37,633 nt of DNA from Paraphysomonas bandaiensis (taxonomy: Eukaryota; Protista; Chrysophyceae): contig CBFFRP010000336.1 in the NCBI GenBank assembly GCA_965644295.1, forward strand, positions 1-37,633, in the 5' to 3' direction. Below, one piece after another: positions 516 to 31,975 of this stretch. The first letter of the stretch is position 1, and each line of letters starts with the position of its first letter. The notes under the pieces are model-generated. The model had not been told where the DNA came from and made no database searches. It worked only from the letters and a program-made list of their open reading frames with translations. The position numbers were made by a program, and so were the translations under genes.

Positions 516-1499
516 CAGGGGGGATTCGAAATAAACAACAGATTTCAGTTTTTTTTTCAAAAATACTTTTTTTTGACTTTTTTTCATCATTTTATGATTT
601 TGATAGTGAAGTGATCATGATGCATCCCTCTTAAGACAAGCATCACACACACATCATCCACACCCCTCATACGATGCTCTCACCCCCACAATAACAACAC
701 ACGAGATCAGAGTAAGTTCATGTGACCATATGCATATCTCATAACCCTATATTAGGCCTAACAAGAGGGAAGAGAGAGCAGCCATATCCATCGGATGAGA
801 ATCACAGAGATGAGCACACAGCAAGAGGAAGGAGGGACGAGACTCCTCTCTGAGCCCTCGGGGACTGAGGAACAGCGATCAGAGTAAGTTATTCGATCTG
901 GAGAGGGGCCGAAAGGCTCTGTGCAGTCAGCATATTCAGACTGCTTCGACGGTCTCTGTTCACATCAGCACAGAGCAGCGCACACACGCAGCTGATATGA
1001 CTGCGAATGAGATCTGCCATCAGATATCTGTCTATTCATTTATTGGGTATCCCTCTAATAGCGTTTTGGTCTGAGTTTGATGTCATCGGAGGTGTTATGT
1101 CGAGGTAACGGCTTTGTGTAGATATTGACTATGCCTTGTAATATACGTTGAATACAGACGTAATATCACTCCTAAAGCAACCTTAAGACAAACGTGGGAA
1201 AAATGTTCAAATTTGGGACTTTTGATTGAAAGCTATGTTCTACGAGTAATTTTAATGTTAATTTGTCCCGAAATGTTATTCGAGTAGTTTGCAAGAAGTT
1301 TTCATAATTATAGTATGATATTTTAATAAAATATATGATATATTCATTATTTATAAGTAGTTACCGTGGGGCTAGTACGTTTTTCCATAACTTTTGGGGC
1401 TGAACCTACTGCACTCTAGTATCTTTTCATTCATAAGGTACAATTTCTACTTCATAACTAGCACAAGTTCTATTGACTCTTTTCATGACGTTAGCAGCT

Positions 1500-4150
1500 T
1501 CCCTTCCATTCCTTCAGCTACTTCACCGACTATGAACTCTATATCATATTTTCCATTCTTGTATTCTAATACGGCACCATTAATATTGTAAATTTTCTGA
1601 TCTTTTCACCTATATTTCATAGAAGTGTTCGTGCCCACTACTATTCTCAGCACTACTATCGCCACAAGTTTCAATGCATTGCGTCGATGACCTCATTTCC
1701 AATATCTTCACTCAACTATATCTTCATTTCCACTTTCTTCACTCATATACTGCTTTCACTTGAACAGAGCTCTTCCTCACTGGGGAGCTGCTAACTTGAA
1801 ATCGTGAACGCTTCTTCTTATGGACAACCTTTCGACGAACAGTTCTACGCAACTCAAAATCACTGCCATCATAGGACACACCAGACAATACAACGGTCAA
1901 GATTGAGTGGGTCACGACGCCCTCCAGGAGTAGCCACATTCATCAACAATGACGCCATCGCCCTGTCCCCCAATGCAATCAACAAGTGCATTTATCTCCC
2001 CATGTGCAATCCAATCTTCCGCTACCACATTCTCAAATGAATTCATGGGGTCATCGCCTGGATGCAACCTGACCACTCCGCTTATTCCTCCAGTAAATCC
2101 TCTTGCCTCCACCTCGGATATTAATCATATGTCCTTGACGAACGAATCGGGATGCCATATCCGTTGGGGACTCTCTCCCCACAACTCAAAATTCCGACCT
2201 CATGTGCAGCCAGCTTTTTCCTTCTCTTCCACTTCCTGAAGACCTGAACTTATACCGGGAGAGCGTTCCTATTCACAACTTCTCCGTTAATCATACAGCG
2301 CTCAACACGCACACTGAGATCAACGTGGTTATCTGAACGCTTAAAGCCCCATCAACTCCATCGAACACAGCCCGTGGCGCACATCCACTGAAGATCGCTG
2401 GCTATACAGCGATCACTCAAGGGAACAACCTCCACAGGTTCCGCAGTTTCCCTTGAGAAAAGGATATCACCAAGTAAGTGGTATTCGAAGACGGTGGTGA
2501 TATATTCTGCTACCGTATCTACACGTAGAATTCTGACCTTGCCCACTCGTTCCCCATTCGCGGAGAGCAGATAGATGTTTCCTTGGAACTCTATTCGGCA
2601 TTCGTATAACACCGCATCTATCACTCCTCTGGACCCTTCATTAAAAGAGTAAGGGTCAGGAGGTTGAGAGGGCTATGACGATAGAATTACCATCCATCCA
2701 TGTAAATACCTTGGTCGATATCCTTCATCGGGTTATCGGAAACATCCGCGGACTTGGCATATCGTTTGGAAGAGTCGGAAATGATCTGACCTACGTCGTC
2801 TGCGCAGTATGCGCGGTAAAACACCCGTACGCCTTTGCTTAAGCACACTGTAGCAAGGGCCAGCGCCTCAAACGTCCACTGAAGTAGCGCCTTCTCACCT
2901 ATGATACGGGCATTTACGAGAGGGTCGACGTGATGTCGAGGGCTTCTTATAATCTGGAATGGCAAAGAGATCTTAAAGCACACGTGGGGTCTTATTCGTC
3001 GACAAAGCTTTCTCAATCTTAGCTTTATACTGTTGAGGGGTATTTATACATACTTCGATTGAATTGCTTTTCACAACAACATTCCAAACTTGGGAGTCGA
3101 TATCCTCCTGAGTGTGTCCTACCATCAGCCTGGTAAGAACAAATCGCTTGCACAGACGCCTTCTTGCTGCAATCAACTCGTACAAGGCAAACCAATCGAA
3201 TAGTCTTCTCCATGGTGTCCAAGAGACAATGCATCGCAACATTTGCACAATTATTAATTGTATGAAATGTACGATACAGTATATAATACTACCACGGTTG
3301 CGGTTAAAACGCCTTGAAGGTGTGCTGGGGCATGCTTTCCATGGTGAAAAGCATGCATCATCGTGATTTATTTTCCCTATCCATATGTGACTTATGGGTT
3401 CGTCGAAAAGTGTACTAAGAGCAGCATAGCATTGACATTTTCCTATCACTCCCTCATTACTACGTAGAGGATGCAGTGAACCCAGAGACGCAAATTGCTC
3501 CACAGATATTGCTCCACGTCCACATTAGTCAGATCGTTAATATACTTGTGGTGGACCTCCTTAATATATCGAGGTTCGAGATGAATATCCCCACCAAGAT
3601 GGGGTTGATAGTCACCCACTACGTGAAAGTGATCAATCATCCAACCATACGCAGATAATACCACGGGGCTTTTGGGGAGAGCTCTGTTGCTGCTACCTCT
3701 TTCTGCGTTAAATGAATTCCAAATGACTTTTTGCAAGACCAGCGAGAAGAGCAGAAGCAACTTGGCTACAGGCATTCAACTTCGCCTCGGTGTTAGTTGA
3801 GCCACCCTTCATATCATTGATAACACTGCCAACATGAGAAAAGGACACAGCGTACACATTGCAGAAACAGTCCTGTAAATAAAGAACCTAAACTTAACTC
3901 ATAATTCGTCCATAACTATATACCTTGCAGACACCACTGATTCTTGTAATCATTCTGTCCACTACCTACCAATCAATCCATGCAATTTGAAAGAAGACTA
4001 CGAATGAGTTTTTACTCCCGACGATTCATAAAATCACTCTCGTGGATACAGTCGAAAGCCAAATCCACAGCTGCATCATATTCCACGCAAAAGGCATATA
4101 TCATTGCAACATGTCGGCCTCACAATCACATCAGGATACTTCTTCAGTTC
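1500..4150 (-). pseudogene. Decayed putative transposase of the GHT-x-EDID (DUF7869-like) type; ends approximate
   Basis: Collinear fragments in shifting frames: VCK^DCF across a 51-nt GT-AG intron (3873-3923), WMIDHFHVVGDYQP..IHLEP, GKCQC, HLQGVL, CANVAMHCLL, RLMVGHTQEDIDS. Family recognised from memory of the motif. Confidence 0.7.
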
Positions 4151-4243
4151 AAAACGATCTACGATACACAATAATTTTAGTTCCATCGAATGAGGCAAAA
4201 TACATATATACTGTATGCTCAATTTACTACATATATAATATAC

Positions 4244-5603
4244 ATATCAAACAAACTGATGTGGACATATATGCCATGTGGGGCGCGGGTCCAGGGCGCT
4301 CAACCTTTCTATGACCACCGAATTTGCTCTAGAAAGGAGCTACCCTAGCGAGCGGCATCAGCCACAGCATTGCTGCTATGTAAGTCATAGTGGGAGCTCT
4401 CATGGGCCAGGGAATTACACCCCGTTAAACTCTATATACCATAAGGTCTACAGAGTAAGCCCTCGCAGTGGACTCGCACCACTTTAAGCACATGCCGAGC
4501 AAGGCCGCGCAAACTAGTACCCCTTCTCTACGTCTACCCCAGCATATACGAGCATACAGTATACTACTACATGATACATGATGTATGTATATATCAAACA
4601 AACTGATGTGGACATATATGCCATGTGGGGCGCGGGTCCAGGGCGCTCAACCTTTCTATGACCACCGAATTTGCTCTAGAAAGGAGCTACCCTAGCGAGC
4701 GGCATCAGCCACAGCATTGCTGCTATGTAAGTCATAGTGGGAGCTCTCATGGGCCAGGGAATTACACCCCGTTAAACTCTATATACCATAAGGTCTACAG
4801 AGTAAGCCCTCGCAGTGGACTCGCACCACTTTAAGCACATGCCGAGCAAGGCCGCGCAAACTAGTACCCCTTCTCTACGTCTACCCCAGCATATACGAGC
4901 ATACAGTATACTACTACATGATACATGATGTATGTATATATCAAACAAACTGATGTGGACATATATGCCATGTGGGGCGCGGGTCCAGGGCGCTCAACCT
5001 TTCTATGACCACCGAATTTGCTCTAGAAAGGAGCTACCCTAGCGAGCGGCATCAGCCACAGCATTGCTGCTATGTAAGTCATAGTGGGAGCTCTCATGGG
5101 CCAGGGAATTACACCCCGTTAAACTCTATATACCATAAGGTCTACAGAGTAAGCCCTCGCAGTGGACTCGCACCACTTTAAGCACATGCCGAGCAAGGCC
5201 GCGCAAACTAGTACCCCTTCTCTACGTCTACCCCAGCATATACGAGCATACAGTATACTACTACATGATACATGATGTATGTATATATCAAACAAACTGA
5301 TGTGGACATATATGCCATGTGGGGCGCGGGTCCAGGGCGCTCAACCTTTCTATGACCACCGAATTTGCTCTAGAAAGGAGCTACCCTAGCGAGCGGCATC
5401 AGCCACAGCATTGCTGCTATGTAAGTCATAGTGGGAGCTCTCATGGGCCAGGGAATTACACCCCGTTAAACTCTATATACCATAAGGTCTACAGAGTAAG
5501 CCCTCGCAGTGGACTCGCACCACTTTAAGCACATGCCGAGCAAGGCCGCGCAAACTAGTACCCCTTCTCTACGTCTACCCCAGCATATACGAGCATACAG
5601 TAT
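4244..5603. repeat. Tandem array, 347-bp unit, 3.9 apparently identical copies
   Basis: Units start at 4244, 4591, 4938, 5285; identical ORF translations recur at exactly 347-bp spacing. Confidence 0.98.
4283..4510 (-). ncRNA. Candidate structured RNA (228 nt), also at 4630-4857, 4977-5204, 5324-5551
   Basis: Closing stems GCGCGG/CCGCGC and GCTCGGC/GTTGAGC, two 5-bp hairpins with 7-nt T-loop-like loops, a GCAA tetraloop hairpin and further stems; G-U wobbles work only on the minus strand. Confidence 0.55.
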
Positions 5604-8600
5604 GCTATCTATATACATGTATATCTAACTCTCAGTCATGAAGACACTCAGCTACACTATAAGCATACAGCACACCAGCGGCACCACTAACCTGTGAGTG
5701 ACACATACTTGGAACGTGAAGAAGTCATAACCAAACTCTACCTCATCATAAGGGACAATCAGATTGTGTGTGTGTGTGCTGACAGCTCTGCTGAATATAT
5801 TTGAATTATCTCACTGCGAGTAACACACACACACACCTACATACATACATCCACATGTCCAAGTCTCTATTTTTGATGTGTGCTTGTTTTCATACGAAAA
5901 CCGTGACCCTCATCATCACCACGCATGACCCTCATCACCGTACTGTATACGTATATACGCAAAATACCACATCTAATTTTGAATGTAGGCATCATGGTCA
6001 CACATACATGCATGTACATATATAGACATGTAGACATGGACATAATGATGCGCATTAAGACGCACTGTGCCAGAGTATGATATAGTAATATCATGACTGA
6101 TTTAGATGCATTGCAAGAATGTATGGTTCAGGATACAACAGGGGACCTGAGTGAGAGCGATACGGGTGACGTCGCCATCACTGCACCCTGTACAGATGTA
6201 TGCACCCCATCTCCATCTGCCACATGTGCGGGTTGAGGTGGTTGTGGCAAGGAGTTCTCGATTGATGAGAAGGGCTCCGATTTTCATCATGGAGTGCTAT
6301 GTGCCGCATGTAATGGGATGTAATCATATGTACCCCACATCACACATATATACAGAGAGTGTACATGTTGTCACGTTCGTAGTATTCATCGAAGGTTCTA
6401 ATCTTGGAGATGCTCTTCAGTCTGACCTCACTACTGGTGATGGCACCCCTCTTTCACAACTTCCCTCTAGTCCCGTGACGTATTACAACGTAGAAGATTA
6501 CTTTTTTGATGATGATGACCCTGGTCATACTCTACCAAAGGTGACGACCCTCTTACTCCTCTGTCTCAGCCCGTTGCATATGAGGAGGTGAGTTCCCGTA
6601 GTATATATTAGTGATTCAATTTACTCCTTCTTACTATTTTCGGACAGTTGCTCCCCGGTTAATGGTTCTTTGAGGAGTAAGTTATTACATGTATACCCCT
6701 CTTTCACTTATGTACCATGCTGGTAGTATTAATACCGGTCAGTGTAGTTGTTGTGCTTGGTGTAAGTTTTTAAATGTTTTTTACTTATATTGTCGCTGTA
6801 TTACTTAGTTAATATTGTATATGTTTTATATTGATGAGGCTATTTCGATACTTACAGACGCAGTAATAACAATTTCGTTGTGCTGAGCACTGTCCTGAAA
6901 TCATTCTTGGAATATTGTTATTTTTTTAATAAAATAACAATAAGAATAGTATTGTATAGCTACTATAATATTATTACACAGTTTTAATAATATTAGATTA
7001 ATGAAAACGATAAGTATAGGATAGGGTACAAAGGGGTCCAAAACGTGGGAAAAATTTTTTCCCACGTTTGTCTTAAGGTTGCTTCTATTTCAAGAGCCAT
7101 TGTGGCAACCGCGTACGAAAGAACTGTGGAGGGGTGGATGGAAGTTGATATGCAGAATAAGCTCTCAAGGCGAGGGAGAACAAGTTACCTGCAGGATTAG
7201 TGGAAGTGGTAGGAACTGCGTATCTCATACCTTCGCTCTGGGTCTGTGACAACAGAGACCACAGTACTTGTCAATGAGTGACAGCAAGCTAACCAGTTGG
7301 TCCCGGAGTCAATATATTGGTCTTGTATTGTCCGCTTTTGCCTCAACAGTGAAGTTATTGACACTCATAGGCACCATAGCCAAAGAGTGGGAGGTGTGAG
7401 ATCCCGACACGTTGTAGTAAGTATAAAGGCTCAGTTCTGTCAGTCTGTCAATTCGTTGGGCTGTATCAGAGTGGGCTGCTACTCCCACAGCAAAGACGTC
7501 GCACCATTCACCTCTATTTTTTGATATGACACTGAAGTTTTACCTATATAAAATGGTAGCGGTGATAAAGGTATATTGCTCTGTAGCAACGACGGTACAA
7601 GTGCTAATGAAGTTGTACCGCAGGAGTGAGATTGGTGCTTTGGTGAAGGACCCTAATATCAGCTAGGTTGTACAGTTCACTCATACAACGGCAGAGAGAT
7701 GTACAGGATCAGAGGTCGATAACGACGGCGATATTCGAGCAATCCTGCAGTACCTGTTGCGATATGAAGGTGGTATAATATGTACATAATAATACGTATT
7801 GTTATTCCTCATTTATTTCTATACAATCAGGAGTTGACAGGCACTGGCGCAGTATATTCTGCATCTATTCTTACTGGAAAACGTGGCAGAAGTTCGGTTG
7901 ATTGTCGATTGTAAGTACTTTTAAGTAATCAATAGCCTTTGTATTGTATAGCACTATGTAGTACACATATATTATGTATAATGTAACCGTTTCATTCAAC
8001 ATTTTTTGGTCTGCAATTGATATAATTTTTATTATTTGTCATTGCAAACATGTTCTCTTCACATCTACTACACTAATTATTGCAATACGTATCATACACT
8101 CAACTTAAATCGACTTTCTCAAAATTTCAACAGGTTTGGCGGTTACATCGACTTATGACCATCTAATCGTTTTTCGTTTATGAGGAATGGCTACCAGAAG
8201 ATGAAATAGAGTCCAGTAGTGGTACTGGGATTAGTACCAGAAGAAGAAATTGCAAGGGGGCACTATAAAGGTCTGTGTGATGCTTGTATGTATATATCCG
8301 CCAGTGCATATAGCGTATATTTGACCTAATTTTTGGTGATAATATGTAGAAATCGGAGAAAATTCAAATAAGCAACGGGAAGTCGGATCAAGATAGCTTT
8401 TTTAACTCTTTACACAGGTGCAATATCATTTTTATCATTTTTATTCAATTTTCTTGAAATATTTTTATATCGGGAATACACATATATGATGTTTGTTTAG
8501 TTGTACTTGTACACTTATTTACGTGGCATATGTATCGAAAAATATAAATATTACTGTAGAATAGCCACTGCTATGTCATTGTGTTTCCTTTGCGCTGTAG

Positions 8601-8878: not shown

Positions 8879-9000
8879 TGTAGTGAAGTGTTCAGAATAA
8901 TAATCATAATTTCTTACTTGAAAGTGCATTGTGTTCAACAGCAAGGTTACGGTTTACGTGTAGAGCAAAGTTAACTTCAGTGAAATGTCCATTGTTAACA
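8879..9000 (+). repeat. Copia 5' LTR, second part
   Basis: TGTAGTGAAGTG...CCATTGTTAACA matches 14883-15008 with two 2-bp indels and one substitution. Confidence 0.95.
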
Positions 9001-9911
9001 TGGTAGCGAGTGGTAGCACTGAAGAGACGAAGGAGGACAACAAGGTGCTAAAGTTCGACAAGTATCAGGCGGAGGCGTCTGCTCAAAAAATAAGGATTCA
9101 TCTGATGAAGAAAAATCGGAACCACCTGGGGTTAGAGCCGAAACCTGCTGGAGGAGGCAAAGCACGAGAATTATGGCATGAGCGAAATGACACGTGTGTT
9201 GCAACGATTTGGGAGGCTTGTGAACATGACGCTGATGTATTGGAGGTTGCCAATCAATACATGGAGGCGAAGGCGTTACTTCCAGATGATGATCCCAATA
9301 AGGAAGTTTTGTCCAATGAAATGCTTCAGACGCTGGTGGATAGGTTTAGGGGAGAGTTGGGAAATGTACTCGAGAAGACTACAGCGGAATACCATAGCTT
9401 TAAAATTAGAGCCAATGAAAAGGTCGCTATTGGTATTGATAGGTTGAATGGGATAATACAGAAATTGACTAAGTTGGGACAACCGCCAACCGAGGAGAGC
9501 AAGCTCGCCAAGATCAAAAAGTCCATACATACTCCAGAGCTGAAGGAGTTGTGGTTAGCTATTGCAATGCTGCCTAAAGCAACGACCACGTATCAGATTG
9601 TTAAAGACGCGTGCGAAGAATTTGATGAGGCTAAACGACAACTGGAGGAGTTCGAAATTGACAAACAAGGAGAACAAGTCAATATGCTCGGACCACAAGG
9701 AGGTGTGAAGAATGTCAAATGCTCATTCTGTATGAAAAAAGGGCATACTGCAAGTGTGTGTCGTGTCAAACACAAAAATAAAATTTTCCAGAAGTTCAAG
9801 CGAAATGGGAAGGCTAAAGCAAAGAATATGAAGAAACTGGAGATGAACGAGTGTACCTGGATAGTTGTGCTGGAAAGCAGTTGTTTATCGTCAAGGATGA
9901 TAGAGTGCTAG
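8985..9911 (+). CDS. gag: Copia Gag (true Gag ends about 9830; the tail is out of frame)
   Basis: CCHC zinc knuckle CSFCMKKGHTASVC; position right after the PBS; ORF starts inside the LTR. Confidence 0.85.
   Translation: MSIVNMVASGSTEETKEDNKVLKFDKYQAEASAQKIRIHLMKKNRNHLGLEPKPAGGGKARELWHERNDTCVATIWEACEHDADVLEVANQYMEAKALLPDDDPNKEVLSNEMLQTLVDRFRGELGNVLEKTTAEYHSFKIRANEKVAIGIDRLNGIIQKLTKLGQPPTEESKLAKIKKSIHTPELKELWLAIAMLPKATTTYQIVKDACEEFDEAKRQLEEFEIDKQGEQVNMLGPQGGVKNVKCSFCMKKGHTASVCRVKHKNKIFQKFKRNGKAKAKNMKKLEMNECTWIVVLESSCLSSRMIEC
9001..9010 (+). promoter_or_regulatory. Primer-binding site TGGTAGCGAG
   Basis: Directly follows the 5' LTR and is complementary to a tRNA 3' end (...CUCGCUACCA); initiator-Met identity is inferred from similarity to the TGGTAGC class of Ty1/Copia PBSs. 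Confidence 0.8.
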
Positions 9912-12900
9912 AGAAGTATGTAGAAGAGCCGGGAGTAATATCACTGACCAAAAAGGGATCGGCGATGGAGACCCAAGGAGTGGGAAGTTTTCAGCAGTGG
10001 CACGGCATCAAAGTATGTAACGATGCAGTGAAAAATATTGTCTCTGGAGAGGTATGCTGCGGGCTATGGGGTATGGACTCGAATTACTGAGAGTACCAAA
10101 AATCGTAGAATTGAACACTGGCAGAGAGGTGTTGGTTGGAAATTACGATGAGCATGGAGGAATGCCATGGGTGGCATTGCATGATGTGTTAAATTTACCT
10201 TGCATATCGTCCTGCCATTATGTAATGGGGGGGGGAAGCAGTGAAGTGATGCTGTCCGATACAGTTCAGCAGGATCCCCTCGATTTACTGCACGAAAGGG
10301 CCGGTCATGTTGCTAAGGGAAAACTACTGGAGGCTCATAGACATATGCTGATCAAGGGAACAGGGCTACAGCGACATCATTTATCTAAGACTACCAAAAA
10401 GAAGTGTGAGACCAGTTTGTGCAAGTGGTGTGCTAAGGCGAAGATCACTAGACATGCATTTCGAGGACAAAGTGACCAGAATGTGGAGATGAAGGCGACA
10501 GCATTCCTGGAGCGTATTACAGTGGATATTTCGGTTTATATGAATTGTCCATCTGTGGAGGGGTATAAGTACGCACTTGTATTTGTAGATACGGCTACGA
10601 AAGAATTCTGGGAATACGGTCTACGAACGAGAACTGGGGATGAAGTGTTAAAATGCGTGAAGCATCTCTGTGAAGTCAGGCTACCAAAATACCCAGGGTG
10701 GAACAGGATACAGCAGTACCATGCTGATGGTGGACCAGAGTTGATGGACAGGCGAATCAAAGAATACTTGTTACAAAAATTTGGAACCACATTCTCCTAC
10801 ACTACTAGGGAGACACCAGAATTAAACGGTGTTTCAGAACGGAAATTCAGGACACTAGGAGAAATGACATTATCGCTTTTATTGTCATCGGGTATGCCAA
10901 AAGCGGAGTGGTGGAAAGCCTTTAGACATGCATGCTGGGTTCTTAGAAGATTACCCACAAAGACCTATAGAGGGTGGATGTCACCCTACGAGTGTGTTCC
11001 TGGAGGAACGGTGCCAGATTTTTCTTGGTTACGGAAATGGGGGTGCAAGGCGTACGTTCTCATCCCGAAGGCAGATCGCAGGAAAGACTGGGAAGAAAAG
11101 GCACAGACTGGATACTTTGTAGGGTTCCCAGAGGAGCAAATGGGATACCAAGTATTGATTGGAGATACTATAGTTACGTCTGTGCATGTTTTATTCGATG
11201 AATCTGTGCCTGAGAGATCGGCGGATTATTATCGAGAAATGGACGAGGCCATGGTTGCTGTGGATCCTCAGGAACGAAATATTAGAGACTTCGATTACTT
11301 AATCGGAAAGACCCATGAAGATGGCGGCCACCTATACAAGACCACACGAATATTGGTTCGAAAAGGTTTGATTGTAGGGTATAGATCCCTATTGTCTGGT
11401 GGTGCGGAGCAAGTGGAAGATAAGACTCCTATTCACATCGCCGATATAAAGCGGATGAGTGAAGACCTTGCAACAAGAGCATCTGCAAGTTCTGGATCTC
11501 GTGACGACGGGACCAGCGGACATTTATCACAGCAGTTGACTGGGACGGTTCCATCCCCTTCTGACTTCGTAAGTGCTCCGGGAGAGGAAGCTCCATCAGA
11601 TCGCTCATCAAGGGGCAGGCGTGCAAGGGCTCCAAGGGTGGTGACGAATGTGTCAGTTTTGGGTGAGATGCATTTATTGTCGTCATGTGTCGAAGACGAG
11701 TGCAGCCTATTACAGGAGGCAGATTCCATCTGGTGCTCGTCAGCGGGACCTAAGGTGCCTCAGACATATTCCGAATCCTTGGAGTTGCCGGAACGGAAGC
11801 AATGGAGTTCAGCAAGACAAGCTGAACGTGACGGTTTAGAACGTAGGGGAGTCATGGAAGTTAAGCCCATCCCTACCGGTGTCACTCCATTGAAATCTAA
11901 GTATGTTTTCGCCTTGAAACGCAACAAAGAGGGTGCGATTCAACGATATAAGGCAAGACTTGTGGTACTTGGATGCGGAGACCATGAAGGTGGCAGAGCC
12001 AACAATTATGCTCCAGTGGTAAAAGCGGTAACAGTGAGATTGCTTTTAGCAATCGCTTTTGTTATGAATATGGTGGTGCATCAACTCGACGTATCTAATG
12101 CATTTTTGTATGCAGATATACAAGGAGATGTGTATATGTATGCTACACCAGATTTTAAATTGCCACCAGGACACTGCTTTAAACTGAAGAAAAGTTTATA
12201 TGGTCTTCGAAGCTCACCACGGTCATGGTATAAATGTCTTAACAAGTTTATTAAGTCCTTACATTTTATATCATGTATACTTGACCCATGTTTATATTTT
12301 ACACGGATCAGGGGTGAATTAGTTCTGTTAGTAATATATGTAGATGATATGCTGATAGCATGTCGAGATACGAGTATTATTTTGGAAATTAAGCGACGAG
12401 TATGTGAAAGGTTCGATATTACAGATATGAATGAGATTGGCCAGTTTTTGAACGTGAGAGTGACGAGAACTCAGAATTGTCTCAAACTTGACCAGACAGT
12501 GTACATCAAAAAGATATTGGCGAAGTATGTGGATTTTCTGGGTCCAAGGGACAAGACTCGGCGATACCCACTACCTAGTGATGTCATGGATAGGATCAAA
12601 GTGGGAGTGGAACATGTGCATTCGACTGAAGAGCAGGAATTAGTTGACAATTTTCCCTATCGTCCACTAATAGGAGCGTTACTCTATTTATCTATGAATA
12701 CAAAGCTCCGGGAGAGGAAGCTCCATCAGATCGCTCATCAAGGGGCAGGCGTGCAAGGGCTCCAAGGGTGGTGACGAATGTGTCAGTTTTGGGTGAGATG
12801 CATTTATTGTCGTCATGTGTCGAAGACGAGTGCAGCCTATTACAGGAGGCAGATTCCATCTGGTGCTCGTCAGCGGGACCTAAGGTGCCTCAGACATATT

Positions 12901-14516
12901 CCGAATCCTTGGAGTTGCCGGAACGAAAGCAATGGAGTTCAGCGAGACAAGCTGAACGTGACGGTTTAGAACGTAGGGGAGTCATGGAAGTTAAGCCCAT
13001 CCCTACCGGTGTCACTCCATTGAAATCTAAGTATGTTTTCGCCTTGAAACGCAACAAAGAGGGTGCGATTCAACGATATAAGGCAAGACTTGTGGTACTT
13101 GGATGCGGAGACCATGAAGGTGGCAAAGCCAACAATTATGCTCCAGTGGTAAAAGCGGTAACAGTGAGATTGCTTTTAGCAATCGCTTTTGTTATGAATA
13201 TGGTGGTGCATCAACTCGACGTATCTAATGCATTTTTGTATGCAGATATACAAGGAGATGTGTATATGTATGCTACACCAGATTTTAAATTGCCACCAGG
13301 ACACTGCTTTAAACTGAAGAAAAGTTTATATGGTCTTCGAAGCTCACCACGGTCATGGTATAAATGCCTTAATAAGTTTATTAAGTTCTTGCATTTTATA
13401 TCATGTATACTTGACCCATGTTTATATTTTACACGGATCAGGGGTGAATTAGTTCTGTTAGTAATATAATATGTAGATGATATGCTGATAGCATGTCGAG
13501 ATACGAGTATTATTTTGGAAATTAAGCGACGAGTATGTGAAAGGTTCGATATTACAGATATGAATGAGATTGGCCAGTTTTTGAACGTGAGAGTGACGAG
13601 AACTCAGAATTGTCTCAAACTTGACCAGACAGTGTACATCAAAAAGATATTGGCAAAGTATGTGAATTTTCTGGGTCCAAGGGACAGGACTCGGCGATAC
13701 CCACTACCTAGTGATGTCATGGATAGGATCAAAGTGGGAGTGGAACATGTGCATTCGACTGAAGAGCAGGAATTAGTTGACAATTTTCCCTATCGTCCAC
13801 TAATAGGAGCGTTACTCTATTTATCTATGAATACAAGGCCGGATATATCATATGCAGTGGGAGTATTGTCACGATTCTCAACGAAAGTGAATATCACTGC
13901 ATGTAAACTAATGATACATTTAATGCAGTATGTACGAGGTACTACGGAAAAAGGCATTCAATATAGAGGGAAAGATTTTGATCTTCATATGTTCACGGAT
14001 GCTGACTGGGCGGGTGACCCGTTGACGAGGAGATCAACTTCAGGTTATGTTATGTTTGGAGCTGGTGGACCACTATCGTGGGGTTCCAAACTTCAGTCTA
14101 CTGTAGCTACATCGACTATGCAAGCAGAGTATCAATGCTTATATAATGGATTACAGGAAATGATATGGTCTCGGGGGGTGACTGGTGAAGTAGGATTGAA
14201 AATTGACGAGCCCACACCATTATTCCTGGATAGTCAAAGTGCTCAGGATATATCGGAAAATCCAGTGCAACATCAACGATCGAAACATATTGAGATTAAG
14301 TATCATATGATTAGAGAGCATGTGGATCCCGAACAGTTTAATACAGCGAAATTAATTCATGTGAGCAGTCGACAACAGATGGCAGATATATATACCAAGG
14401 CTTTGTGTGGTCCAATATTCATTGAACAGAGGGAGCGAAATCTTGGGGAAAAATTTAAGACTACTGCACAAATTATCGCAGAGGTACCCAAGGTAAAGAG
14501 AGTTCGTCGTAACTAG
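9851..14516 (+). pseudogene. pol: Copia pol (protease, integrase, RT, RNase H) broken by two frameshifts, a 1.13-kb duplication and an in-frame stop
   Basis: PR YLDSCA; IN zinc motif HERAGH...CKWC and DDE core (TVD, HADGGPE, NGVSER); RT YKARLV, QLDVSNAFL, KSLYGL, YVDD; RNase H FTDADWAG, KHIEIKYH, ADIYTK. Confidence 0.95.
11575..13836 (+). repeat. Tandem duplication (1130-bp offset) covering most of the RT domain
   Basis: 11575-12703 repeated at 12705-13836; at least 10 substitutions, all transitions, plus a 3-bp insertion in copy 2. Confidence 0.95.
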
Positions 14517-17141: not shown

Positions 17142-20100
17142 ATGTCAATCGAGCAGAAATTTATGCGAGCAACACAATATGTTGCCGACGGGGACGTACA
17201 ACTTTCAGATAGTCAGAGAAATGCTTTTTATGGTCTACAAAAACAAGCTATCGACGGAGACTGTAATGTACCTGCCCCCCCATCGTAAGTTATTTATTTT
17301 GTATATTTTAAAGGAGAATTATGTTTTTCAATAGTGGTAATAAGACTGCAAGAAATAAATATGATGCATGGAATGCATATCGCGGGTTACCTAAAGACGA
17401 AGCAATGAAGAAATACATTACTGCACTACAGAAAATTGATAATTCATTTGATCCGAATCCGGAGTCTGTGGTATCACGACCAGTTGCTTCGTCTAAGAAT
17501 GCAACGACTACTCCAGAGGCTGTGGGTGATAGAGAAACATCCTCCAGGGTTATTATTGAAGGCACACTGTATAAACAACGCGATATTTTCAAGGGATGGA
17601 GCCCGCGTCATTTTGTATTGGACGATTGCTTCTTGCATTATTACACGAATAAAGACGACGATCTACCGCGCAAGAGTATGCAGATATTTGGCTGTACTGT
17701 GAAATCTGTGCATTCTGCTAAAGTTGGTGACATGGAGTACTTTCCCTTTGTCATATCGCACCCGAAGTCGACAAAGACGTACAACCTCTCTGCTGATTCT
17801 AAAGCTGCTGCGGACAAGTGGATAACTGCGTTGAAGAATGCGAGTGCGAACGATGCTCCTCCTCCAGTAGTATCATCTGGAGTGGAGAGATTACTCGAAC
17901 GTCGGCCAATAGTAGATGATGATGAACTCGTAGATGCCGCGTATGCACCAGTGAATGAAGAATTGACCCGGAAGAATATTCCAGAGAAGTATTCCTACAA
18001 AATTGAAAAGGCGGTTGAGGCAGTTGTGGACCTTTCTTCAACCGATGCAGAGGGATGGACACCATTATTTGAGAAAAGTGGAGTAACTGCATTTAAACGA
18101 GGCGGAGGGATGGTGTGTATACGTAGCGATTCCTTGATTCCCCAGGCTCTTATTGACATCTTTTCTCTTCTCACAAATGAAAGTAGACGCAAAGAGATAG
18201 ACCCGACACTATCGTCGTGCAAGATTCTTAAGTACTTCTCAGATAATACCACACTCGAATATCAAAGGTACAAACAAGTGTGGCCATCAGCTGTGAGAGA
18301 TTTCTGTAATCTTACTCACTGGAGACTATTAAAAGATGGTCGTGTGGTGTTTGTTTCCTTTTCTGAAAAGTTTGAGGATTTGTGCCCTCTGGAAGAGAAT
18401 GTTGTCCGGGCGGAGCAAATCTTGGCGGGATTTGTGCTACGCGTATCTCCCAAGGGCACGATATGTCAGTATATATTGCAGGTTTGTTTGTATTTTATGT
18501 ATCATTCACTCTTTACGTTTATGGTGAATAGTGTGACTTAAGAGGCAATCTTCCAGTAAGCATTATTAATTTAGTTAGCTCTATGCAGCCTATGCTACTG
18601 GCCAACATCAGGACAGTGCTTGAAGCAGATTCTAGTTCGAAGTCGCGCCCAATGTTGATGGCTAGACCTAATAAGCCTGTCACTTTTCAAGGTTAGAAAC
18701 TTCTATCGTCAGTATAATGTGTGGTGAAAGTATTGTAAATAGACCTTTTATTTGCCTTTGAAAACACCAAGTCTACTAAATCTGCCCTCTCCACTGCCAC
18801 TGATGTGGGAGAAGATTCTGCTGTTTCCGACTCCCAAAAGACTGAGCCAACTGCATCGGATAAGGTTTGTTACAATTTTTATATGAATTGGCAGTGAATT
18901 CAATGCACAGGTGCGACATGCAGTCAAGTCTGCTGTCGATAGAGCAACTGATCCTGCGCAGAGACGTAAAAAGTTACATAAGCTCAACACCGTTTCTCTC
19001 ATGGTTCTACTACTACCGGTGGCGCTGTATTATGCGGTCCACACGTAAGCAACCACAACTATATGTACTTGTTTGTCACATCCCTACAGTAATTATCGGG
19101 CCATTGCATTTATTGCCGGGTTATTATACTCTCTGGAATATGTGTTTCGCCTCCACCTCGGTATTCCGCATCGCAAGGTAACTATCGATATAAATATATC
19201 ATTTGCTCACATCCTTTACTGCAGATTGCGTCTCAATCCATCGGCGCCATACCAAACGGTCGCATGCTAGTTCGATTTACAGTGGACATGGGAAGACTGC
19301 TTCGGTACCTTGAAGGACGCCGTGAGGGATCTGGTGTTGAGATTACTGTTGTCCACATTGCCCTTAAAGCAGCAGCCGTTGCACTGTCTGAAATCCCAGA
19401 TTTGAATGGGCATGTGATTGGTGGTGACTTTTATTACAGTAATTCAGCTGGTGTCGACGTGAGCATGTCCTTGGAGATGTCCGATAATGATACAGTGATG
19501 ATGAAAGTCGAACACGCCGACTCGAAACCAGTAGATTACATTGCGGATGAGATTAAGAAGCGCACCATAGACCTGCAAGAGGGAAAGGACGTAAGTGTTC
19601 AGCGCAAAGCTCGACTGCTTGGCATGTTTCCTCCTGTGGTCGCTGGTGTGATCCGCAAATTTCTCAACATCGTTGGGGGGAAGTGGGGTATATCGATTCC
19701 GCTTCTAGGAATCGTTGGTTTTCCACATGGAGCATGCACCGTTGTGACTATCCCATCTAAAGATTCGAGCGATAATGATGTTGATATCGCTATGCTTCCT
19801 AATATGAGTGATACTGCTACTCCAATTACTATCACCATCGGGGGTGTCAAATTGCAACCAATGCTCGACCAAGAGCGTAAACTTGCTGCCTCACATGTCC
19901 TCAACGTTGCCGTTGCTATAGACACAAATGCTGGATCTCTTGCCGAGGGTAAGAAGTTTGCTAACAGAGTCCAGCAGCTGATGAATACTCCCGCTTTACT
20001 TGACAAGGCCGATCGTATCGCTGCAGTATCGCGCGAGGACGAGAAAGCTGCTGCTGAGAGAGAGGCGGCTCATGCAGCTCTCTTTAGGTCGACGAAGTAA
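17142..20100 (+). CDS. Multi-domain lipid-binding protein: ACBP + PH + START + two predicted TM segments + 2-oxoacid dehydrogenase acyltransferase (E2)-like domain; about 889 aa. Exons 17142-17284, 17335-18481, 18532-18691, 18743-18864, 18911-19044, 19090-19177, 19225-20100
   Basis: Six GT-AG introns (50, 50, 51, 46, 45, 47 nt) join into a 2670-nt frame with no internal stop. ACBP FYGLQKQAIDGDCN..P, KYDAW..YRGL.KDEAM.KYI; PH IEGTLYKQ..IFKGW..RHFVL...KWITALK; START VWPSAVRDF, DLRGNLP..IINL; E2-like VDMGRLL, ITVVHIALKAAAVALSEIPDLNG. Confidence 0.88.
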
Positions 20101-28711: not shown

Positions 28712-30085
28712 TGTGACAAATCCGCATGTAGTCCCATATATCGTAGGGTGAGTGTATCCTGACTACAGTGAGTATACGGCGGTAGGGTAGCTGTTGGGTG
28801 GAGGTATGGGGGTACGTATGTACTTGAGTACGTGTGTACGTATGTAATTGGGTATGAGGTACGACGAGTAGTAGATAGGTACGATGAGTAGTAGATAGGT
28901 ACGATGAGTAGTAGATGAGTACGACTACAGGGACAGCATTACGATAACTGTAGAGATCCACGAAGAAGAGGGGGCAGCGGAATTTAATGGCAACGATCCC
29001 AAAGTGGGGAAGAGCGAAGGGCGGAGCGATGGGAGGACGATGTGGACGGTGCACGGGACACATCACTCTTGGAGGCATGGGGGGATACCGGGACCGGCCA
29101 AGGGACGGCCCCATTCGAGGAACCAGTCTACAACCGTGGGGACGGGAGTAGACACAGTAACAAGGACAGGCCAGGGATGGAGGCCACATGGGAGAGACTG
29201 TACAGAGATTGGAGTGGGTTGCCGGAATATCAAGAGTCCGACGAGGGGGACCCACTAACAGGAAGGCCTGTACGAGCGAGAGAGACCGGAGTGAGGGGTA
29301 TGGAAACCACCAGGAAATTGTTTAGTGAGAAGATGCGGCTAGGGGAATTGGAGCAGGAAGAGAGGGAGTGCAGGCCTGCAGATATTCCATCATGGGTGTG
29401 GGTGCGTCAGAAGTATGCGACAGAGAAAGCAAGAGATCAGCCGGTGATAGAGATGAGAGGGAATCCACGGACAGAGACTCTCATATTTGATCGTAAGTGT
29501 AGGAGCTGCCAGGCAGTACTGAAGGCAGGATCAGCGCCGAAGTATGCTACACAGTGTTGGGTATGCTGGTATAGAGGAGGTCGGAGAGAAGGGAAGATAA
29601 TGAGGGAAGAGGGGCAGACACCGACGAGTAAGAGGGAGGACACAAGAGCAGAGCATTATTGGCAGTCTCATAGGGGAGAAAGAGGGGACGATTATCCGAA
29701 GACACCAGCCAGAAGGGATATAGGGGAAGAGTATCGAAGTACACCAGTGATGGAGGAGTTGGCTGCGATGGGAGTAGGGGGCGGGAGAAGAAGACGAGGG
29801 GAGGAGATGTTGTCACAGGATGAGTGGAGTATGGGAAGTAGGTCCAGTGGTAGACGGAGGACAGATGAGGAGGAGAGCAGACGAGATGGCGGATGGATGC
29901 AGGAGGACATTCAGGTAGCCTCGAAACCCGTGGGACTATCACAGGAGACCCGGAACATGCTTCAGAGGAATATGCTGCTACATCTGGTGAAGCCAGTGGA
30001 ACCAGAACATCAAGACAAGTATGTATGGCAAAGTGAGAGGCTGGTGAGGAGAGAGATACAGAATGTGAGAGAGAGGATGACGGAA
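28712..30085 (+). mobile_element. Deleted copy of the same LTR (28712-28957) joined to the gag-like coding region
   Basis: Same LTR start and 20-bp tandem; purine-rich ORF with CRSC...CWVC; cut at 30085 by the duplication junction. Confidence 0.55.
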
Positions 30086-31264
30086 GGCTTCAAGAGATCC
30101 TGCTTAAAGAAAACGGCGTGCAGCAGAGCTCACGTTTATGAGAGAAGAGGACCACTGTGCTACAGCCGAATGAGTACAAGAAGAAAGAAGGCGGCCAATA
30201 TCATTGATAAAAATGGCCTTATTATCCGCGGCAGAAAAGGTAGCTGCAACGCAAGCTGCTAAGACATCTTTGAGAGCAGAAAAGGAAGAAGTTCGCATTT
30301 AGCAAATGAATGATGCGCGTAAAGTACTATCAAATCTAACAATTACGAGGTAGCTTATGATTTAGCATTCGAAATATCTTTTTATATTTTACGTTCATTA
30401 CAGTTTTGTTGTCTTCTTTCCAGTGATATTAACCAGTTATTCTTTAACTTAATGATCATTTGTTTTTCCACTATATTGGACATTAATACTCTCAGTGGTA
30501 TGTAATGTAATACACATGTTGCAGTATGAAGCAAATAATGGTATAATAACATGGTAGAATATAGTGTGTTTCTTCTTCAATTCGTGGATATCTGATTTCT
30601 AAATACAAACAAAGGCAGGATGAAACTATCTTAATTAGATATTATATATAAGGCACACGGAAACGTTACACAATCAATCCAGAACTCATATCATACAAGG
30701 CAGGACTAACATAAGTACAAGTTGCATCGTGAACCTACTGTACATGGTACGTAGTCATCAAGCAAACGTGGTGATCTCTGTGAGAGGTGTTGCGTTCCGG
30801 AAAAGCCAGGGAGATCAAATGGCAATTCCTATAGGGCGATAGTGGAGTGATATCTACACTCCACGAAAAGAGCACGCAACGAAACAAGCATACGCCAATA
30901 GGTTACTTTTAACAAGCCAGAGAGATTACTCAAGCTGTATTGGAGGAGAGTAAATAATCTTCGATGTAGATTCTCTATCCAGAGTCACTCTATGGCATAA
31001 GGAATCAGTCCGCTATTATGAGGCTATATATATAATATATACATTATAGACAGAGTATTAACATTCCCGAGCCTTCATATGAAAACACACACCAAATCAC
31101 ATAGAGTCAATGTCTCTACTTATCTCCATTCTTACCAGTAATGAAGGCTTTACGGAGGACAGCGGATGGACACCAGGTAACACTGCCGATACAGTTGTTC
31201 ACCTCACATTGCTGGTTGAAAGCAGCAGTAGTATGGATGAGCGGAGAGGTGTCCTTATGATATG

Positions 31265-31975
31265 TGTGACAAATCCGCATGTAGTCCCATATATCGTAGG
31301 GTGAGTGTATCCTGACTACAGTGAGTATACGGCGGTAGGGTAGCTGTTGGGTGGAGGTATGGGGGTACGTATGTACTTGAGTACGTGAGTACGTATGTAA
31401 TTGGGTATGAGGTACGACGAGTAGTAGATAGGTACGATGAGTAGTAGATAGGTACGATGAGTAGTAGATGAGTACGACTACAGGGACAGCATTACGATAA
31501 CTGTAGAGATACGATGGTGATAAGTATGATATGGGTGCTTAAGTGTAGAGCCAGCTTGTAAGTGCAAGATTGCTATGTGAGTCACTCTTTAAGGTTATGA
31601 GAGCATAAGTAAGAAAGTTCTAATAATTGATAGTTATACGATTATCTGAGCTTAAGGGTCTGGTTAATAGTATCTACCAGACACCTAGTAAGATTAGACG
31701 TCACAGCACGTGTAAGAAGTTATCCGCAGGTATGAGCACAAGGTACCCAGCTGATGCATCAAGGCGAAGCCCTCTGCCAAGGACCCCCACATCTCCAATT
31801 GTCTCATGTGGTGGACAACGTGGGCTGCCCTCGCGACCCAGTGGACTTGATCAGCCACGAAGAAGAGGGGGCAGCGGAATTTCATGGCAACGATCCCAAA
31901 GTGGGGAAGAGCGAAGGGCGGAGCGATGGGAGGACGATGTGGACGGTGCACGGGACACATCACTCTTGGAGGCAT
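31265..31975 (+). mobile_element. Gypsy-like LTR (31265-31705) followed by the start of a gag-like ORF, truncated at 31975
   Basis: TGTGAC...GTCACA termini; starts exactly where homology to the inverted arm stops; internal 20-bp tandem AGGTACGATGAGTAGTAGAT x3; ATG at 31732 reads into the same peptide as ORF 29042. No TGG PBS and no pol seen. Confidence 0.6.

Follow-up and report, generated by a model that had tools for sequence, protein, structure and literature searches.

Does a tandem array of stem-rich units upstream of a transposase-like gene encode a structured RNA, or does it belong to the control region of the gene itself? The question is raised by a contig of the chrysophyte Paraphysomonas bandaiensis (CBFFRP010000336.1, assembly GCA_965644295.1), of which the whole stretch of 37,633 nucleotides, the window in what follows, was analyzed. 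The array occupies positions 4244-5607. A first-pass annotation made from the sequence alone had proposed that each unit specifies a large, multi-junction RNA on the minus strand. We find that the array is part of the 5′ upstream region of a cut-and-paste DNA transposon of DUF7869 type. The reading that we prefer for its origin, and to which we would give an even chance, sees in it a ~300-bp non-coding module that was duplicated in tandem, in the manner of L1 monomers, and that carries a small conserved hairpin. The units would act as repeated promoter or enhancer (perhaps leader) units driving transcription of the transposase, as in mouse L1; the hairpin could serve as a cis element, recognized either in RNA of the transposase strand or, as a dyad, in the DNA; and the number of units may shift by unequal exchange or slippage.

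The array and the transposon that carries it

Tandem Repeats Finder (TRF) reports the array as the sole large one in the window, with a period of 347 bp, 3.9 copies and 99% matches, in agreement with the four copies that had been claimed. Units 1-3 are identical and the fourth is truncated at about unit position 320. The GC-rich core of 228 nt (4283-4510) between AT-rich linkers, also described earlier, is equally clear, at 54% G+C in the core and 39% in the linker. As to coding potential, every sense frame is closed by stops, 347 is not a multiple of three, and an exact look-up of two open reading frames (ORFs) of the unit found no record. An assembly artefact is unlikely, as contig C73 bears a second copy of the transposon with equally many units. 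Since the eight genomic units of these two copies differ at one linker base only, in ~2.7 kb, the array itself provides no covariation data.

The array sits within a 5,910-bp element (1175-7084) bounded by terminal inverted repeats (TIRs) and a target-site duplication (TSD), and it lies on the transposase strand, so the earlier association of the module with a transposon holds. The second full copy (C73:89526-95440) shows 99.4% identity over exactly the element, unrelated flanks, a CTA duplication and 3.9 units; the same perfect 29-bp TIRs and CTA duplication, present at two otherwise unrelated loci, are what is expected of a cut-and-paste element. When the two copies are compared (C73 against C336, the copy studied here), the array shows 1 difference in 1,364 bp, and the right arm (5608-7084) has diverged by ~1.2% plus indels, ~4-5 times more than the left arm (1175-4243; 0.26%). 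Elsewhere in the 62.5-Mb genome neither the array nor its left flank occurs, and the unit sequence itself is confined to the two copies and a relic with a single unit. No satellite expansion was found outside the element; the array lies within it and moves with it, as a transposon-internal satellite does.

More than 20 further copies share the same ends at 70-100% identity. All copies with a checked interior are internal-deletion derivatives that have moved recently and lack the array. Transposition therefore does not require the array in cis, which is what one would expect if it were a promoter region. The copies of the family are young, and most of them are such derivatives, 0.5-2.9 kb long (contigs C77, C20, C41, C28, C182, C100, C213 and C409, among others). 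The right part of the element holds a 146-aa ORF that may be its second gene.

The transposase-like gene that had been placed just downstream on the minus strand is present and is of DUF7869 type. A candidate ATG (4188-4186) lies 56 bp past the end of the array on the same strand, and the N-terminal exon motif CCxDxCLL is found near 4112. The DUF7869 match of this element is weak (E 0.0056, below the cut-off) compared with that of a paralog on C104 (2e-21), but homology to the paralog is clear. A tblastn comparison with the same paralog reveals frame changes, at least one in-frame stop within a conserved block and a gap of ~60 aa, some of which introns may account for. Judged from these breaks, the transposase gene of this element is probably dead. 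The transposase seems broken in the only two full-length copies, and no element with these ends was found to hold an intact gene.

Diverged modules and a shared hairpin

A covariance model of the core was run over the 62.5-Mb genome and returned only the eight units and one diverged match, C111:52914-53068, which was checked by blastn, MAFFT and nhmmer. Identity in the core is 67%, and the alignment spans ~285 of the 347 nt, with part of what had been taken as linker. The homology goes on for a further ~350 nt downstream, as far as a recognizable remnant of the N-terminal exon of the transposase (nhmmer E 3.7e-30). Because the homology extends into this exon, the module is native to the 5′ region of the transposon, and capture from a host gene was rejected. 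The module on C111 is single-copy rather than tandem and intergenic, upstream of a Peptidase_M16 gene; we read the locus, from its sequence, as an old relic of a related element. Directly upstream of it lies a 47-nt inverted repeat (L058 1741-1787 and 1982-2028, on C111) with 85% complementarity and a 194-nt spacer. A search for a close relative by way of the Peptidase_M16 neighbor yielded a single distant protein (51% identity) in the searchable collection.

The best-supported element of the unit is a 5-bp hairpin preceded by UUAA, CGGGG-UGUAAUU-CCCUG, which recurs at 4755-4775, 5102-5122 and 5449-5469. Its counterpart in the relic, UGAGG-UGUAAUU-GUUCA, keeps 4 of 5 pairs with 7 of the 10 stem bases changed and the loop identical. 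A third lineage was found with the filters of the covariance-model search turned off: three closely related DUF7869 elements on C104, C210 and C192 (family B), with an N-terminal exon 40-52% identical to that of the array element (family A). Upstream of the gene and on the transposase strand, they carry UUAA UGAGG UGAAACU CCUCA, with the loop UGCAACU in one copy. Relative to UGAGG/CCUCA of family B, CGGGG/CCCUG of the array has two pairs altered by compensatory double changes and a third in which G-C has become G-U, and the relic has the UGAGG arm in common with family B and the exact UGUAAUU loop in common with the array. Array, relic and family B thus share UUAA, a 5-bp covarying stem and the loop UGNAAYU. 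Where the array has its 8-bp hairpin (4429-4456), family B has a CUCAC-UUAU-GUGAG hairpin.

The exact pattern occurs genome-wide only in the eight array units and in C104 (two), C192 (two) and C210 (three), at spacings of 248, 241 and 243 bp, respectively. On C104, the hairpin belongs to a 248-bp tandem repeat of 1.9 units at 99% identity, the end of which lies ~108 nt ahead of exon 1. Family B has 2-3 tandem modules of ~245 bp at the equivalent place and in the equivalent orientation. In the 187 kb of other strand-bases scanned, only 2 hairpins of the same class were seen. With two mismatches allowed, the pattern also matches C297:387378-387398 on the minus strand (ATAA CAAGG TGCAATT CCTTG), which has a perfect 5-bp stem of different sequence and a fitting loop; C297 is without a DUF7869 gene.

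The module stands in sense orientation directly upstream of the transposase in four units in the young element and in one in the relic, as does an analogous module in 2-3 units in family B, and tandem sense units upstream of the first ORF, the arrangement of L1 monomers, are found in both family A (3.9 units) and family B (1.9-3). This architecture bears on an alternative that we consider unlikely: a neutral, satellite-like internal tandem repeat, in which a piece of non-coding interior was duplicated, through slippage or unequal exchange, shortly before the last transpositions, so that the array would be without function and the hairpins incidental. It would account well for units that are identical within and between the two copies save for the one linker base, and for the success of deleted copies without the array; transposon-internal arrays are, moreover, common (PMC4079207, PMC3879986). 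A neutral repeat would not explain why tandem modules occupy the equivalent place and orientation in a family whose transposase is only 40-52% identical, nor a hairpin whose stem covaries while its loop is kept.

Several observations weigh against units that serve as promoters. With a transposase that looks broken, a promoter would at present have no working gene to drive. Identical units mean that their four-fold expansion is recent, and it may itself be neutral. The 12 AUGs on the sense strand of each unit argue against whole units being scanned as an mRNA leader. Upstream of two other DUF7869 paralogs (C373 and C390), array and hairpin are both missing; since the genome holds at least 24 DUF7869 loci, the tandem module and hairpin are a feature of one DUF7869 clade and not of all. 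Outside the 21-nt motif, no primary-sequence homology between the units of families A and B is detectable (local alignment P=0.96), the covariance-model match to family B is weak when taken alone (E 0.08-0.3 in 10 kb), and the hairpin search pattern was written after both families had been seen. The weight of the family B match accordingly comes from position and architecture, not from the model score.

The hairpin can also be viewed as a DNA dyad, and the family B unit folds equally on both strands (z -2.97 sense, -2.90 antisense). Together with the restriction of the module to these transposons, this would fit tandem DNA-level binding sites for the transposase, that is, an internal transpositional enhancer. 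We regard such sites as very improbable, given that the units hold no TIR-like sequence at up to three mismatches, that copies without the array have spread to more than 20 sites, and that the half-sites change and yet stay complementary, which is unusual for protein half-sites.

The larger fold, known RNA classes and other features of the window

All eight stems that the first-pass annotation had listed can be read on the minus strand where it placed them, as can the G-U pairs in four stems (five pairs in total) and the GCAA loop. The minimum free energy of the core is -92.7 kcal/mol (z -2.91) on the minus strand and -77.9 kcal/mol (z -2.07) on the plus strand. This is not clearly beyond chance, since the core falls within the 4% tail of its surroundings: when 102 arbitrary windows of 228 nt were taken across these 37 kb (mean z -0.47, standard deviation 1.33), 4% reached z -2.9 or lower, so the folding energy is unremarkable for this genome. 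Folded by itself, the relic does not outdo its shuffles (z +0.41 and +0.81), which is what a dead copy would give. Both results fit the neutral repeat described above. In the Boltzmann ensemble, four of the eight helices are probable, namely the closing helix (0.91), GGGC/GCCC (0.96), the 8-bp hairpin (0.97) and the CGGGG hairpin (0.82). The GNRA hairpin reaches a pair probability of 0.38, and GCUCGGC/GUUGAGC, the AGUGG "T-loop" hairpin and CUAUGAC/GUCAUAG each remain at or below 0.005.

That each unit encodes a closed multi-junction RNA of ~228 nt, whether a ribozyme or ribonucleoprotein (RNP) scaffold, a retrozyme-like circular template or a relative of group II intron domain I, has in its favor that the stems exist, that the minus strand folds 14.8 kcal/mol below the plus strand and that the closing helix is probable on the single sequence. 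The relic speaks against it. Its deletions remove the 5′ arm of the closing helix (8 nt) and the whole 8-bp hairpin (32 nt), and GCUCGGC/GUUGAGC and CUAUGAC/GUCAUAG carry double changes that break pairing and do not compensate. Pair retention was compared with a null in which the observed substitutions were permuted among like bases, the comparison resting on the one homolog, C111. The long-range helices alone keep 10 of 17 pairs, which is the null expectation (P=0.67), and three helices have next to no probability in the ensemble. The closed fold is not supported as a functional unit, and we consider an RNA of this kind highly improbable.

For the whole set of eight helices, 28 of 38 pairs are kept (null 22.9 +/- 2.6, P=0.03), and with the proposed pseudoknot 36 of 46 (null 27.5 +/- 2.7, P=0.0014). 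These helices were chosen a priori, and their retention above the null is a further point against a neutral repeat. The signal is local: the local helices plus the pseudoknot helix keep 26 of 29 pairs (P<0.001), with 5 compensatory changes against 1.6 expected (P=0.017), in a subset chosen post hoc. The same pairs read on the plus strand score lower (22 of 29), owing to the G-U pairs. RNAalifold, given the core and the relic, predicts only local helices, with a column-shuffle z of -2.14 on the minus and -0.27 on the plus strand, but compensatory pairs are no more numerous in its prediction than in shuffled alignments (P=0.38). The earlier call for homologs with compensatory changes is therefore answered in part, as one homolog has them in the local hairpins and the long-range helices stay at the null.

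Single motifs fared differently. The CAUAGCA hairpin keeps all 7 pairs in the relic, with one compensatory and one wobble change, but its loop goes from GCAA to GUA, so the GNRA loop is not a conserved motif. Two T-loop hairpins had been proposed. In the first, the AGUGG register has one pair broken and the loop changed at 3 of 7 bases in the relic, and a shifted register, GUGGUG-CGAGUC-CACUGC, keeps 6 of 6 pairs with one compensatory change (RNAalifold); only the second loop, UGUAAUU, is preserved. The suggested pseudoknot, between GAGCUCCC and GGGUAGCUC, retains 8 of 8 pairs, one through a C-to-U wobble, but it becomes an ordinary nested helix once CUAUGAC/GUCAUAG is dropped, and its retention is weak evidence because both arms lie in conserved blocks.

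What survives could belong to a smaller RNA borne by the transposon, a two-hairpin domain on the transposase strand that would regulate in cis as part of a leader, bind the transposase or a host protein, or give rise to small RNAs that control the element. We think this improbable, though it draws on the retention and compensation in the local and pseudoknot helices, the strand difference in RNAalifold, a G-C-closed UGNAAYU loop that fits the T-loop pattern in families A and B and the relic, and the folding of the family B sense unit. Set against it are the nearly equal folding of the family B antisense strand, so that strand specificity, which the G-U pairs do favor for the transposase strand, is weak; the compensatory count at the level of shuffles, with a subset of helices picked after the result; and the absence past the core, on direct reading of both strands, of any stretch of at least four T, which leaves no sign of an RNA polymerase III (Pol III) gene. 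More doubtful still is a specific version of this idea, in which the two-hairpin domain (the UUAU-loop hairpin, UUAA and the T-loop-like GGUGNAAYUCC) would be a functional RNA of a DUF7869 clade. Its transcription would start from the tandem units and follow the strand of the transposase gene; as a signal for protein binding or processing, it would govern transposase expression or form a complex with the transposase.

Known RNA classes offer no match to the units. A cmscan of the window against Rfam 15, which the first-pass annotation had suggested, gave 0 matches at the gathering score, and likewise none for the C111 homolog; at E<=10, positions 4200-5000 gave only chance matches to a snoRNA and an sRNA (E~9). 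The resemblance to group II intron domain I finds no counterpart among the Rfam group II models even at that cut-off. A group II intron was rejected: there is no domain V and no intron-encoded reverse transcriptase (RT) or maturase, and the ORFs of 1175-7084 give only the weak DUF7869 match. Nor does a retrozyme or known ribozyme fit, with no match to a hammerhead, twister, hepatitis delta virus-like or other Rfam 15 ribozyme model. ARAGORN finds no tRNA in 4000-5900, and a tRNA or tRNA-derived short interspersed element was rejected on this ground and because the module is confined to eight units and one relic. A Pol III B box was rejected as well, since GGUGNAAYUCC differs at the positions of tRNA U55-C56 (read directly). 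Motif patterns had 0 matches in metagenome and viral collections, and two matches in a scan of bacterial and archaeal genomes were discarded as chance hits inside bacterial coding sequence.

Coordinates of the transposon, the array and the RNA elements discussed in the text (window positions)
Feature	Positions	Strand	Basis or remark
Left target-site duplication, CTA	1172-1174		read directly; right copy 7085-7087
Left terminal inverted repeat, 29 bp	1175-1203	+	100% complementary to 7056-7084
DUF7869-type transposase-like gene, probably degenerate	1915-4188	-	tblastn with the C104 paralog, ~4147 down to 1915
Array units	4244-4590, 4591-4937, 4938-5284, 5285-5607	-	TRF and unit comparison; sense is the transposase strand by convention
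Helix GAGCUCCC (4399-4392) with GGGUAGCUC (4345-4337)	4337-4399	-	proposed earlier as a pseudoknot; 8/8 pairs kept in relic
Hairpin CAUAGCA-GCAA-UGCUGUG	4363-4380	-	7/7 pairs kept in relic
UUAA and hairpin CGGGG-UGUAAUU-CCCUG	4408-4428	-	pair probability 0.82
8-bp hairpin ACUCUGUA..UAUAGAGU, apical UUAU loop	4429-4456	-	pair probability 0.97; deleted in C111 relic
Register-shifted hairpin GUGGUG-CGAGUC-CACUGC	4465-4482	-	RNAalifold; replaces the AGUGG "T-loop" hairpin
146-aa ORF	6151-6591	+	open in five family copies including one at 88% identity; no Pfam match
Right terminal inverted repeat, 29 bp	7056-7084	-	complementary to the left repeat

Elsewhere in the window, a copia-type retroelement (8985-14516, plus strand) with gag, integrase, SH3-like and RVT_2 matches is separate from the array element and holds the RT at 10-14.5 kb; its RT domain is repeated in the ORFs 12768-13469 and 13482-14516, which suggests a nested or duplicated copia copy. 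Two identical 20-bp x 3.4 minisatellites (28857-28924 and 31410-31477), 2.55 kb apart, may be long direct repeats of another element, and a G+C-rich 406-aa ORF between them (29042-30262) has no Pfam match. An ACBP-PH-START domain exon lies at 17321-18541 on the plus strand.

Relation to known systems

T-loop hairpins occur in structured RNAs such as the tRNA T arm, RNase P and riboswitches. The hairpin described here resembles them in its 7-nt loop starting U-G-N-R-A and closed by G-C (GGUGNAAYUCC), which is conserved in three lineages, but the likeness is a match of sequence pattern and comes with no partner motif, tRNA or Rfam family. The resemblance to group II intron domain I is limited to a short motif, in an element with neither domain V nor an intron-encoded protein. 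The case is also a warning: tandem units of this genome that are rich in GC and in stems are often parts of transposons and not free-standing RNA genes.

It is important to consider what each reading would mean. If the modules are promoter units, they provide a testable case of a cut-and-paste element that tunes expression of its transposase by unit number. Should the hairpin work at the RNA level, the poorly characterized DUF7869 transposase group would gain a new cis-regulatory or RNP element, and the two-hairpin RNA, if real, would give a eukaryotic cut-and-paste transposon an RNA partner. We found no description of monomer-type upstream regions for eukaryotic DNA transposons, in a literature search that was not systematic and in which the term DUF7869 returned nothing.

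Among DNA transposons, the nearest parallels are internal tandem repeats such as those of the foldback element Tetris (PMC4079207) and the DTC84 tandem-repeat miniature inverted-repeat transposable elements (PMC3879986), where a short tandem array likewise lies between the inverted ends and moves with the transposon. There, however, the array is the core of non-autonomous elements, whereas here it is fixed upstream of the transposase in two families and lost in the short derivatives. The 5′ monomers of mouse L1 (L1Md), tandem units upstream of the first ORF (PMC9022269, PMC6454616), come closer in arrangement, with tandem, non-coding sense units of ~200-350 bp upstream of the first ORF and a unit number that varies between copies or families. 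The two have no sequence relation, and the host here is a TIR-bearing cut-and-paste DNA transposon of a protist rather than a long interspersed nuclear element. The units described here also carry a small covarying hairpin, and their promoter role is one that we infer from sequence. The likeness to L1Md is thus one of layout, in which units of similar size stand in tandem and in sense orientation before the gene that they may serve.

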